Shown: positions 47,203 through 51,306 of the stretch, piece after piece
How the letters are laid out: each line of letters begins with the position of its first letter
How positions within the stretch are numbered: the stretch's first letter is position 1
NCBI GenBank assembly: GCA_023334545.1
Contig: JAADVB010000118.1
Location: 1-53,983, forward strand
Origin: Salisapilia sapeloensis CBS 127946
Lineage: Eukaryota > Protista > Oomycota
Reading direction: 5' to 3'
DNA length: 53,983 nucleotides
Notes under the pieces: model-generated
What the model was told of the DNA's origin: nothing
Databases searched by the model: none
Seen by the model: the letters and a program-made list of their open reading frames with translations, nothing else
Position numbers and translations under genes: made by a program

Positions 47203-47908
47203 ATGATTCGACGCGCAGTGCAATCCACAGCTCGCTATGGTCTATCCAGCCAACGCAGTCGGTCGCTACACACCTCTCCCATCCGTATGTCCCAATTAGA
47301 CATGTTAAACAAGAGATGAGCTAGTCCTAATCGACTGGCATTCCGTAGTGATGCACTTGGACTTTTCCAAATTCGCCGACAAGCCCACGTACGTACTCTA
47401 CTAACATGCCATTTGCACACGTCTCAGCTTTGCAATGACTGGCAACTAGTGTCAATATCAACTTTCGTCGTCGCGATGGAAGTATTACGCCAGTACAGGC
47501 CAAGGTCGGCATGTCACTCCTCGACGTCGGCCAGGCCAACAATCTCGAGATGGAAGGTAGTGCCTCTCTGCTCGACTACTAGGTTGTCTCTCAACAAGTG
47601 CATATAGGTGCATGTGAAGCGTCCATTGCGTGCTCGACGTGCCACGTGATTCTGGAAGACGAGCTGTTTGACTCGTTGGAAGAAGCCATCGAGGACGAAG
47701 AGGACATGCTTGACCTCGCCTTTGGACTCACCAGCACGTACGTCCTATCTTTGCACTCGATAGTATGCACAAGTAACGAACCCTGGATCGTAGATCTCGC
47801 CTCGGGTGCCAAGTGATCGTGGACGAGAGCTTCGAAGGCACGACGGTGACACTCCCGCAGGCCACGCGCAACTTTTACGTGGACGGCCACGTCCCAGCGC
47901 CGCACTAG
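47203..47908 (+). CDS. Mitochondrial adrenodoxin-type [2Fe-2S] ferredoxin (5 exons)
   Basis: GACEASIACSTCHVI (C-X5-C-X2-C), EEDMLDLAFGLT.TSRLGCQ, TRNFYVDGHVP.PH. Four GT-AG introns. Presequence-like N-terminus. Confidence 0.95.
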
Positions 47909-48005: not shown

Positions 48006-50261
48006 TTACTTTGTACTTGATACACCCGCCTCCGCCTCCTCACTCTTTCCTTCATTACCCTCCGCCACCAGATGCGTCGCACTGCAGACGAACTCGACGG
48101 CCGCATGGACGCAGTAGACGTAGTACGACTCTTCCCCCTTGACGTTGAGGTTGTGGATGGCAAAGTTCTCGATCAGATGCAGCTGCGCGTGCAGGAGCGG
48201 CAAGTGGGCGTGCAGCAACACGTAAGCTAAGAGAGGGAAGAAGGTGTCGACTGGGATCTGGATGGTGCCCAGCACACGCGCCGCCTCCTGATGGAGCGCC
48301 GTGACGCCTCGCATGAGCTCCTCCAGCAGGTCGCACGGCACGACGCTCTCCATGCCACTGAACGCGTCGATGGACTGGAGCAAGTAGACTCTGTAGGATC
48401 CCTTGGGTTTCGACGTCACGAGCTCCGACCGGAGCTTCATCGCGAGGTCGGAGGAAAGTCCTAGCTGCTCGAAGGACACACCTCGCAGCTCCTGCGCCTT
48501 CTTCCTCCAATTTTTGTCCTTCCGAAGACAGTCGCGCAGAGCTCGTTGGCTGAAGCAGAGGCAAGCGACTCGGGAGAAGACCGAGCGCTGGACGAATACA
48601 TAGAGGCTCTTGGCCGAGTCGGAGGAGACGTCAAACTCCCTCCGGATGCGTCTCGTCAGTCTCTGGACAAACTCTAGAATGAACTCCGGTCGAGGATCCT
48701 GCGCCCACCGAGGAGCTCTCGTCTTGGTCAGGTCGACGTTCGGACGGAGCTCCGGGACGGATGTTGAGCGCATGCGGGAAGATGGGAGGCTCCATTGGGA
48801 CAGGAGGCGCGAGAGCGGACTGGCGTCGAAGGGTCGCTGGCTGGAAGAGGACGAAGTGGAGGATACGTCGTCGTCCTTGTCGAGGGGCTCCTGGACGGCC
48901 GACGCGACGTCTCTGGACATGCGGTGGACCCACTGGGCCAAGCGTCCGTTGGACTTGGCCAAGACGATGTTCTCAAAATGCGCCTGGGCAACGTCCCACC
49001 ATTCTGGTTCGGCCATGGCGTCTCCGAATTCATTGTAAAACTCTTCTCCAGACAAAACCTGTAATATCTTACCTACCTGAGACTCCGACTCTAGTCCGCT
49101 GCGCTTGGCCTGCACCAGTCGGTACCAGGACGCAGCCTCTAGAAGAGTGGCGAGCATAGCACTGCGCACTCGAGGAGACTCGAGGCAGCCTGCGCCGTGC
49201 TGACTCTGTTGTACCTGCCGAGCTGTCTTCCGCTGCTCCTGGATCGTCTCCAGCGCCTGCACCTGTCGAGACAAAAAGGTGTACTTGAGGTCGGCCTGGA
49301 GCATGTCCTTGGCCGAGTCGAACGAGTCCAGCTGCCGCTCCGTCAGTTCTAAATCCGGATTGTGGGCTGTGACGATCTGGAGGATGCCTCGGACATGTCG
49401 TCGGTGGCGCTGCAGCTGGTTCAGAGCTCGGTTGTGCGTCATGACCGAGAGCTGGTCGAGCAGAAGCGACAGACCGTCTCCGCTGCCTCCCTCGGCCTCT
49501 CCTTCCTCCGCACGTCCTCCGCACAAGAGAGAAGAGAGGAGAGCGTTAGACGAGGCACAGGACGGAGGGATGCGCCTCCGGAGCGCTAGATTAGCCTGGT
49601 CTCGCTGCCGGTCGATCTGGTCGTCGATGTCTTCAAGCGCGAGAAAGAGCTTTCCTCGGAGCTTGTCTGGAGCAGAGGTCGCGTCGGACCCATCGGACGC
49701 GTCGTCACTCGTGTCCTGGACGACGGCTGGGGACGACAGAGGGTACTTGGAGGCAGCGTCCACGACCGGCACAAAGTCCTCCTGCCGGATCTGACGCAGA
49801 CGGTTCCACGCCTCCGTGCCGGACTCGGGTCGGTGGTACCCGACGTTTGCGCTGTGTCTGGAGAGTCGAGTCGGGTGGCTATGAGATGTCATGAGGTCAT
49901 GCCGAGAGGTGTCGTCGATGGACCTCGTCCGCCGGCGGGACCAGGTCACGTCGGTCGGAAGCGTCGCGACGGGGGCCGAGTGTCCTAGCCACGACGGGCG
50001 AGCGTACTCCTCGTTGTCGTCACTCGTGTCTGTGGAAAAGGACGAGTCGAGCTTCTCTCTGGACACTCTAGACGCCATGCACGTCGCCGACGTCTGCGCG
50101 AGTGTCGTCGTTTCGAGCGTGTTGGTCGGGGAGGTCATGACGTCGGCGAACGAGTCGCGTCTGGCCTGCGTCGGAGGGCGTCCGTAGAAGTCGTGTATGA
50201 TCGGGTGTGCCTGCCAGTCGGGCGAGATCCAGACACTGGGCGCCCCGACGTCCGTCTTCAT
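48006..50261 (-). CDS. VPS9-domain protein (putative Rab5-family GEF)
   Basis: C-terminal [35 protein letters not shown]...HAAVEF. Start is placed at MKTDVG (50261) because the ORF extension to 50627 is antisense to the Ras gene exons. Confidence 0.85.
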
Positions 50262-50378
50262 CGAGCGGAGAAGAGTCTGGCGCTCGAGGAGGTGTGTACC
50301 GTGTGCGTACCATCGTAGTGCCCATTCGACCGTCCGTCGCGCCACGCTGGTCCAGCCCTCGCCCGTCTTCCCTCCGCC
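50262..50378. promoter_or_regulatory. Putative bidirectional promoter region (117 bp)
   Basis: Lies between the inferred VPS9 start (50261) and the KHA-Ras start (50379). The call is positional only. Confidence 0.4.
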
Positions 50379-51306
50379 ATGCCGTCGGACAAGCGCATCT
50401 TCATCTACAAGAACGAGGCTGGGGCCGAAGGAAAGGTACTTGTCGTATGCTAGAACAGAATCACTCGGTTCCTCACGCGAGACGCAGGTCCTGACGATTC
50501 GGCCCAAGGACACGCTCCTACGCATTCGAAAGTCGGCCGGCAAGAAGCTCGGCGTCAAGCCCAAAAAGCTCTTCCTCACCACCGGCGCAGAGGTCGTGAG
50601 CATCGACGAGCTCCAGAACGACGACACGCTCTACGTGTCCCAGGGAGAGCCCTTCTACAAGAAGAACGCAGGTTTGGCGGCCCATGCGTCAATGCACCTG
50701 TCCATCCTCGGCTCCGGCGGCGTCGGCAAGAGCGCCATCACGCTCCGGTTCGTCCGAGACACCTTTGTCAAGGACTGGGACCCGACCATCGAAGACGCAT
50801 ACCGCAAGTCCATCCAGGTCGACGACCGGACCACGACGCTCGAGATTCTCGACACGGCCGGACAAGACGTACCCTTTCACAGACCTCTAGCCACGAGCAT
50901 GCTCTAGACTAACGCCATCCGATAGGACTTTGAATCCCTTAGGGCCCAGTGGATGATGGACAAGGACGGATACGTCTTCGTCTACAGCATGGACTCTCGC
51001 CTGTCGCTCCACGAGCTCCAGTCCTTCTTCGAGCTCCACTTGCAGATCAACGAGACGCGGCGGCCGATGCCACCAGTCATCCTCGTTGCCAACAAGAAGG
51101 ACGTCGTGGAGCAGAACCCGACCAAGTGCCAGGTGAGCACGGAGGAGGGGCGGAGGGTGGCCCAGTCGTACAACGCCAGGTACATCGAGACGAGTGCCCT
51201 CACTGGCGCCAACGTCTCGGCCGTCTTCGAGACCTTTGTGCGGGAAGCCAGGCGGAAGCAGACGACCGCGCCGTCCTCCAAGAAGAACAACTGCGCCATC
51301 CTCTAG
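50379..51306 (+). CDS. Ras-subfamily small GTPase with N-terminal KHA/DCX-like ubiquitin-fold domain (3 exons)
   Basis: G1 GSGGVGKS, effector loop [10 protein letters not shown]3 DTAGQ, G4 NKKD, G5 ETSA, CaaX CAIL. Exon 1 [19 protein letters not shown], first intron 50436-50487, second intron after DTAGQD. Confidence 0.93.

Follow-up and report, generated by a model that had tools for sequence, protein, structure and literature searches.

A Ras-subfamily GTPase with an N-terminal KHA domain in Salisapilia sapeloensis, one member of a stramenopile-wide family

Ras is the textbook single-domain switch. In the DNA analysed here, a gene for a Ras-type GTPase begins with an additional domain, which raises the questions of whether both domains truly belong to one protein, to which family the additional domain belongs, and what it could contribute to a small GTPase. 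The window is a stretch of 53,983 nucleotides (positions 1-53,983 of contig JAADVB010000118.1, assembly GCA_023334545.1) from Salisapilia sapeloensis CBS 127946. At positions 50379-51306 of the plus strand, it carries a gene of three exons with a product of 272 amino acids. From the N-terminus on, this protein has a beta-grasp domain (~75 aa), a flexible linker (~11 aa), and a Ras-subfamily G domain that is complete and terminates in CAIL (Table 1). The identity and architecture of this gene as a KHA-Ras are held with very high confidence.

The splicing of the gene was derived from the GT..AG borders of the introns, the in-frame stops inside them, and exact agreement with the orthologues. The short exon 1 aligns with the N-termini of 24 orthologues and is 83% identical to two Pythium proteins (P0004 and P0012), and the exon junctions GK/VL and QD/DF are free of gaps against 24 orthologous proteins. 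The N-terminal peptide pattern quoted in the original prediction occurs in the sequence, and the spliced gene model that contains it is clean. Exons 1-3 were searched one by one, and the full-length analyses were carried out on the Saprolegnia diclina orthologue (P0016) and on alignments of database proteins. A scan for bacterial-type promoters and terminators gave nothing, and its model is inapplicable to a eukaryotic gene. Residue positions in the G domain come from alignments with Rap2A and with the Ras chain 5wdr of the PDB, and subtracting 84 converts them to H-Ras numbers.

Table 1. Features of the KHA-Ras gene and of its upstream neighbour, in positions of the window.
Feature	Position	Strand	Description	Basis
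VPS9-domain gene	48006..50261	-	Rab5-family GEF type, ~751 aa	Pfam VPS9 1.3e-11
Intergenic stretch	50262..50378	.	117 bp separating the start codons of VPS9 (-) and KHA-Ras (+), which diverge	
Exon 1	50379..50435	+	Met1-Lys19, first KHA beta-strand	translation
Intron 1	50436..50487	+	52 nt, GT..AG, phase 0	in-frame stop if retained
Exon 2	50488..50868	+	127 aa	translation
Exon 2, first part	50488..50661	+	remaining KHA/DCX-type beta-grasp domain, residues 20-77	Pfam, fold of orthologue
Linker	50662..50694	+	residues 78-88, ~11 aa	sequence and length vary across the family
Exon 2, second part	50695..50868	+	G domain from beta1 to switch II, residues 89-146	Pfam Ras, PDB matches
P-loop GSGGVGKS	50710-50733	+		alignment
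Trp116 at the Tyr32 position	50776-50778	+		alignment
DTAGQ, Gln61 equivalent	50863-50865 (Gln)	+		alignment
Intron 2	50869..50925	+	57 nt, GT..AG, splits QD/DF	in-frame stop
Exon 3	50926..51306	+	126 aa and TAG	translation
Exon 3, first part	50926..51252	+	remaining G domain, residues 147-255	Pfam Ras, PDB matches
NKKD	51091-51102	+		alignment
SAL	51193-51201	+		alignment
Hypervariable tail	51253..51306	+	Lys-Lys, CaaX box CAIL, stop TAG	translation
CaaX box CAIL	51292-51303	+		translation

The fusion of KHA and Ras is genuine and not an annotation artefact, as shown by several lines of evidence. A small KHA gene and a separate Ras gene that appear fused would be the alternative, to which we assign a negligible probability. 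Exon 2 (50488-50868) is one open stretch that codes for KHA from residue 20 onward, the linker, and G1-G3, and in S. diclina the orthologue is encoded by one ORF of 819 nt that has no intron. Moreover, complete transcriptome ORFs (MMETSP) from Paraphysomonas, Mucochytrium, and Aplanochytrium contain the same N-terminal region together with Ras, and KHA is recorded by Pfam for the Paraphysomonas ORF (P0056). With exon 2 as the query, a word search gave 789 relatives; most of the top ones are ~270 aa long and have the same set of domains, and hundreds of such database proteins share the architecture. Both tandem paralogues of S. diclina also retain the KHA domain, with dN/dS values of 0.27 for KHA and 0.18 for the G domain. 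The conservation of the KHA domain in oomycetes, labyrinthulomycetes, and a chrysophyte, and its retention in both of these paralogues, indicate that it is functional.

By sequence, the N-terminal domain belongs to the KHA family. Exon 2 alone, a fragment which lacks the 19 aa of exon 1, was matched by Pfam KHA (PF11834 / PS51490) with an E-value of 2.3e-6 and 28.0 bits against the cut-off of 29.6, and by Pfam Ubiquitin_DCDC1 with 3.4e-7 and 31.2 bits against 30.4. Complete orthologue domains exceed this KHA cut-off (P0016 scores 35.9 bits, against 29.6), and KHA matched 20 of the 23 family members, with a best E-value of 2e-13. Among the same 23 proteins, Ubiquitin_DCDC1 matched 19, DCX2_DCDC1 13, and DCX 5 (the last at E<0.01). 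The gathering score of DCX proper (PF03607) was not reached by residues 1-76 of P0016 (19.0 vs 22 bits), and there was no Pfam match to DCX in the window exons. Neither RA nor RBD was matched by Pfam in the window exons or in the orthologue domains. Searches of the genome for the RA and DCX families returned no match, and the controls of these searches gave none either, so no absence is claimed. In a comparison of the KHA-domain profile with PDB sequences, the KHA regions of KAT3, KAT1, AKT5, and AKT1 were found at 6e-4 to 0.03 and doublecortin at 0.024. The domain is present in a single copy per protein, with no tandem pair, and its net charge is basic (+3 to +5).

By predicted fold, the same domain is placed in the DCX/CIDE-like branch of the beta-grasp domains. 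Modelled with AF2, the orthologue domain folds as a beta-beta-alpha-beta-beta grasp (pLDDT 88). Among the best 50 of each search, the closest solved structures were the DCX domains of human doublecortin, DCLK, and Toxoplasma TgDCX, which superpose with a Foldseek TM of 0.82-0.90 and a VIA-align Z of 10-12.6 (rmsd 1.3-1.6 A over 75-76 of 76 residues). The CIDE-N domains come next (Z ~10), followed by ubiquitin-like proteins (Z ~9), and RBD and RA domains were missing among these best 50 structural neighbours. In the Atlas, the models nearest to the orthologue domain include KHA-BTB-pentapeptide proteins of the KCTD9 type (TM 0.88, rmsd 1.0 A over 72 residues), and DCDC1/2-type proteins as well as plant K+ channels, the latter at TM 0.75-0.81, are also found among the Atlas neighbours. 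A feature search of the ESM Atlas with P0016 gave generic small GTPases only, with scores <0.9, and was uninformative. A KHA/DCX-like N-terminal domain had been predicted, and this description agrees with the data in that orthologues pass the Pfam KHA cut-off, the profile matches plant channels, and the fold matches DCX and KCTD9-type domains. Of the two profiles proposed for checking it, KHA was positive in the complete orthologue domains and DCX remained below its gathering score.

The domain appears to be loosely tethered to the G domain, because the linker has a low pLDDT and a variable length and because the full-length AF2 model of the orthologue reaches a pTM of only 0.65 vs a pLDDT of 87.6. 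Within this model, residues 78-82 of the linker have a pLDDT <50. The length of the linker differs by up to ~30 residues between family members, and its mean pairwise identity is 35%, compared to 48% for KHA and 67% for the G domain.

The GTPase part was described in the original prediction as complete, from G1 to G5 with the Gln61 equivalent and CAIL, and the alignment to Rap2A and 5wdr bears this out. Pfam Ras (PF00071, gathering cut-off 21.6 bits) matched exon 2 with 2.1e-17 and 63.6 bits, and exon 3 with 1.3e-18 and 67.6 bits. Like the KHA and Ubiquitin_DCDC1 matches of exon 2, these lie far beyond chance. The best PDB matches of exon 2 were Rap2A, Rap1B, R-Ras2, and H/K/N-Ras at ~1e-17, and those of exon 3 were Ras, Rit1, M-Ras, and Ral. 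The nucleotide-binding and catalytic motifs are all intact, including Gly12, Gly13, Lys16, Ser17, Thr35, Asp57, Gly60, Gln61, NKxD, and SA-. In the P-loop, Gly12 and Gly13 are retained and Ala11 is changed to Ser. The effector loop is of the Ras/Rap type, WDPTIEDAY, with Trp for the Tyr32 of YDPTIEDSY, and QDDF, which is interrupted by intron 2, replaces QEEY. Both substitutions had been read correctly from the window, and they are hallmarks of the whole family rather than peculiarities of this gene: Trp32 and QDDF are near-invariant in the alignment of 24 orthologues. The equivalent of Lys147 is Leu in the window protein, and Lys was found at this position in none of the aligned orthologues. 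A CaaX box with Leu at the X position predicts geranylgeranylation, and this modification is therefore predicted for CAIL; a C-x-I-L tail is common to most aligned orthologues. Most of them also have a Gly-Gln-Glu motif just before beta1, which the window protein lacks.

The window gene is one member of a stramenopile-wide KHA-Ras family that is already catalogued in databases. The phyletic distribution, which the original prediction had asked about, covers oomycetes (Phytophthora, Peronosclerospora, Plasmopara, Pythium, Globisporangium, Albugo, Saprolegnia, Achlya, Thraustotheca, and Aphanomyces), the labyrinthulomycetes Hondaea, Mucochytrium, and Aplanochytrium, and one chrysophyte, Paraphysomonas. 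One further entry, KAH9261289.1, bears the species name Batrachochytrium salamandrivorans. Under this name, a published note flags a different SAR-type protein, likewise with a KAH92... accession, as "unconfirmed" (PMC12077222), and for this reason KAH9261289.1 was not counted as a fungal occurrence. A word search with the KHA region alone returned 16 candidates, all of them KHA-Ras, and was uninformative on other architectures. The window protein itself is a new sequence: in the word search no protein was >66% identical to exon 2, and for exon 3 the highest identity is 83%, with Plasmopara. The claim of a distinct signalling design does not stand as a property of this locus, as the architecture is conserved across stramenopiles and is annotated automatically, several members being labelled "KHA domain-containing protein" in UniProt, and "Ras-like protein" being a further label in public databases. 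The oligomerisation, microtubule binding, or channel binding proposed along with this design are candidate functions of the domain. No paper describing or testing the KHA-Ras fusion was found in full-text literature searches. Overall, what the original prediction observed is confirmed, and its interpretation is partly supported.

The genome (22.4 Mb in 1365 contigs) contains one KHA match only. A canonical Ras lies on another contig (G000:C1033) and has Tyr32, QEEY, SAK, and CSIL, and the Ras regulators of the genome comprise three RasGEF loci of the CDC25 type and two RasGAP loci. Its PH-VPS9-like-ANK-RasGEF proteins are candidate GEFs for KHA-Ras. Upstream of KHA-Ras, a divergent VPS9-domain gene was found, whose start at 50261 was set by homology to the VPS9 of Pythium oligandrum and whose product shares 40% identity, along its entire length, with the protein of the neighbouring gene in Pythium. 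The 117-bp gap that separates VPS9 from KHA-Ras presumably serves as a bidirectional promoter. The order Fer2 - VPS9 (minus) - KHA-Ras (plus) also occurs in P. oligandrum and Plasmopara halstedii. An ancient linkage to VPS9 was considered and rejected: the adjacency is missing at the KHA-Ras loci of Saprolegnia and Aphanomyces, and the neighbour in Hondaea is a different paralogue. This Hondaea VPS9 gene lies 6 kb from the orthologue and has, by eye, a PX-type-looking N-terminal region. Among the seven VPS9 loci here and two oomycete loci, its sole match is the paralogue L025, and not the VPS9 of the window.

We propose, with slightly better than even confidence, that the best overall explanation of KHA-Ras is a prenylated Ras switch with a loosely tethered KHA domain as an interaction module. 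The protein would be geranylgeranylated and membrane-anchored, and its GDP/GTP cycle would be controlled by the RasGEFs (CDC25 type) and RasGAPs of the genome. The family switch residues Trp32 and Asp62-Asp63-Phe64 may direct it to regulators or effectors other than those of the canonical Ras paralogue. The KHA domain would act as a loosely tethered protein-protein module that docks a partner or scaffold or associates homotypically, and in this way it would place or cluster the switch and not directly alter the GTP chemistry.

Such an adaptor or clustering role of the KHA domain, by partner docking or self-association, is put forward tentatively, as a possibility that falls somewhat short of even. 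Plant KHA regions were linked to the assembly and clustering of channels by earlier yeast two-hybrid studies. The CIDE-N domains, which were counted in favour of clustering, are structurally close to the KHA domain and represent relatives of its fold that oligomerise. In plant channels the function of KHA has been called "unclear", and the domain is unresolved in cryo-EM maps (PMC12318183). Tubulin binding fits at least as well, given the basic net charge of the domain and the fact that the solved structures nearest to it are DCX domains, which bind microtubules. It is also conceivable, although improbable, that KHA-Ras is the first member of the Ras subfamily able to position or assemble itself, either through head-to-tail self-association as in CIDE-N domains, which would build Ras clusters on membranes, or through direct binding to tubulin. 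It would mean that stramenopiles have a spatially hard-wired Ras pathway apart from canonical Ras, and that a self-positioning Ras is possibly tied to endosomal Rab5-type signalling via the VPS9 gene that shares its promoter region.

As an alternative, KHA-Ras could be a cytoskeleton-anchored Ras whose DCX-fold domain binds tubulin or microtubules, for example the cortical or flagellar-root microtubules of zoospores. Among solved structures its fold is nearest to the N-DC and C-DC domains of doublecortin and DCLK, which bind microtubules, and to TgDCX of the Toxoplasma conoid, which binds tubulin. A basic domain is what would be expected for acidic tubulin surfaces, and the oomycetes and other taxa named here are known to form flagellated cells at some stage. 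However, KHA is the best-scoring family and DCX proper stays below its cut-off, there is one domain only, in place of the tandem pair of classical doublecortin proteins, the KHA-bearing KCTD9 and plant channels are without known microtubule binding, and a geranylgeranyl anchor puts the protein on membranes. We consider anchoring to the cytoskeleton unlikely.

The Ras-binding domains known so far are all beta-grasp folds. A further alternative is regulation in cis, in which the N-terminal domain folds onto its own switch regions as a pseudo-effector or autoinhibitor and is freed by activation or by a partner. The RBD and RA domains have a beta-grasp fold in common (PMC1949818), the unusual switch residues Trp32 and Asp62-Asp63-Phe64 are co-conserved in the family and lacking in the canonical Ras paralogue, and most aligned orthologues have the Gly-Gln-Glu motif before beta1. 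Nevertheless, the low-confidence linker and the pTM of the full-length AF2 model suggest no confidently docked pair, the linker varies widely in length, the best 50 of each structural search include DCX, CIDE, and UBL but not RBD or RA, and the window protein is without the Gly-Gln-Glu motif. The probability of regulation in cis is rated as low, a little below that of cytoskeletal anchoring. Far less probable is an integral ubiquitin-like signal that controls the turnover or sorting of the GTPase, perhaps at endosomes together with the VPS9 neighbour. Ubiquitin-like proteins are structural neighbours at Z ~9, and the divergent 117-bp promoter region shared with VPS9 is kept in arrangement in Pythium and Plasmopara. 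But ubiquitin and UBL superpose clearly more weakly than DCX and KHA (TM 0.65 vs 0.82-0.90), no ubiquitin-family Pfam model was matched, the VPS9 adjacency is missing in Saprolegniales, and the Hondaea VPS9 is a different paralogue. The prenylated switch with its KHA interaction module is our preferred reading.

The interest lies in the family rather than in the locus, and for the window the result is mainly the correct annotation of one more member. A lineage with plant and animal pathogens (Phytophthora, Plasmopara, Pythium, Aphanomyces, and Saprolegnia) keeps a second Ras with KHA under purifying selection. Solving the role of KHA-Ras would give a function to KHA, a domain whose role in plant K+ channels and KCTD9 also awaits an explanation, and would inform on the spatial organisation of Ras signalling outside animals and fungi.

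In comparison with known proteins, the same architecture is found in the stramenopile KHA-Ras proteins SDRG_03111 of Saprolegnia diclina, Poli38472_011389 of Pythium oligandrum, and H257_09417 of Aphanomyces astaci. They share with the window protein a length of 267-282 aa, Trp32, QDDF, the WMMDKDGY motif, and the C-x-I-L tail, with 60-65% identity in exon 2 and 69-83% in exon 3. On the other hand, the window protein has a divergent linker, and its gene has two introns whereas the Saprolegnia gene has none. Canonical Ras and Rap proteins (H/K/N-Ras, Rap1/2, R-Ras2, and M-Ras), among them the canonical Ras of this genome, have in common with KHA-Ras G1-G5, the Gln61 equivalent, the DPTIED-Y core, and the CaaX box. 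KHA-Ras differs from them by the extra N-terminal domain, Trp for Tyr32, Asp-Asp-Phe for Glu-Glu-Tyr at 62-64, and Leu for Lys147, and it has a short insertion after NKKD, of six residues in the alignment to the PDB Ras 5wdr. RhoBTB (Rho with BTB) and the EF-hand Rabs are small GTPases with built-in accessory domains as well. The principle of a switch joined to an interaction module is the same in these proteins, but they belong to other subfamilies, and their accessory domains have another fold and are non-homologous. The fold of the DCX domains (DCX, DCLK, DCDC1/2, and TgDCX) is shared, although the KHA-Ras domain is below the DCX gathering score and is present in a single copy. The KHA domains of KCTD9 and of the channels belong to the same sequence family (at the Pfam cut-off in orthologues), and their models superpose with a TM of 0.75-0.88. 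KHA is N-terminal in KCTD9/FIP2 and C-terminal in the plant Shaker K+ channels AKT1, KAT1, KAT3, AKT5, and GORK, and its partner is a BTB-pentapeptide protein in the former and an ion channel in the latter, whereas it is a small GTPase here. Furthermore, the KHA domain of KHA-Ras is net basic, while plant KHA was described as acidic (PMC12318183).

The KHA-Ras gene stands in a block with the Fer2 and VPS9 genes that the window has in common with locus L018 of Pythium oligandrum and locus L019 of Plasmopara halstedii, and exon 3 identity is 79-83%. This microsynteny, together with the exon 3 identity, places the organism closer to the Pythium/Peronospora lineage than to the Saprolegniales. An open frame of 873 codons (window 48006-50627, minus strand) runs antisense to KHA-Ras exons 1-2. 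It exceeds the actual VPS9 gene in length, as homology puts the VPS9 start at the ATG at 50261. The start codons of KHA-Ras and VPS9 are 117 bp apart, which is the entire divergent intergenic region. The G+C content of the KHA-Ras gene is 60% vs 50% for the whole window, along which it climbs from 44% to 54%. In oomycetes, highly expressed genes are often marked by high GC3.

Coordinates of KHA-Ras, its neighbours and related genes (G000, S. sapeloensis assembly; C, its contigs; L, loci)
Feature	Location	Strand	Description
Adrenodoxin-type Fer2 gene	window 47598-47816	+	conserved block
VPS9 gene	window 48006-50261	-	conserved block
KHA-Ras	window 50379-51306	+	conserved block
ORC4	window 51407 onward	+	downstream of KHA-Ras, observed for the window locus only
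Canonical single-domain Ras gene	G000:C1033, about 12.0-12.9 kb (L011:1407-2273)		at least 4 exons
RasGEF gene	G000:C415 (L030:883-4863)		long protein, PH - VPS9-like - ankyrin repeats - RasGEF, one ORF
RasGEF gene	G000:C592 (L031:34-4248)		long protein, PH - VPS9-like - ankyrin repeats - RasGEF, one ORF
KHA-Ras tandem duplicates, Saprolegnia diclina	L017:8001-8819 and L017:9233-10042

Both S. diclina tandem copies retain the KHA domain, and two KHA-Ras copies lie on one contig in Thraustotheca clavata (P0007, P0015) and likewise in Aphanomyces stellatus (P0019, P0020). A KHA-Ras-like protein (P0086, locus L022) also occurs in a record labelled Batrachochytrium salamandrivorans (GCA_021556665.1), where its gene is surrounded by a dense gene array, most of it without a Pfam match. 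Another SAR-specific protein under this species name was called unconfirmed (PMC12077222). The Batrachochytrium record may contain contamination or bear the wrong label.

Two of the three RasGEF genes of the S. sapeloensis genome share the PH, VPS9-like, ankyrin and RasGEF arrangement. Their VPS9-like regions score 23.1 bits (C415) and 20.3 bits (C592), both below the cut-off of 27, and a Rab5-GEF/Ras-GEF hybrid architecture is possible for these proteins. A RasGAP gene lies ~20 kb from the RasGEF gene on C415. The canonical Ras on C1033 carries Tyr32, QEEY, SAK, a polybasic tail and CSIL; S. sapeloensis therefore has a classical Ras in addition to KHA-Ras.
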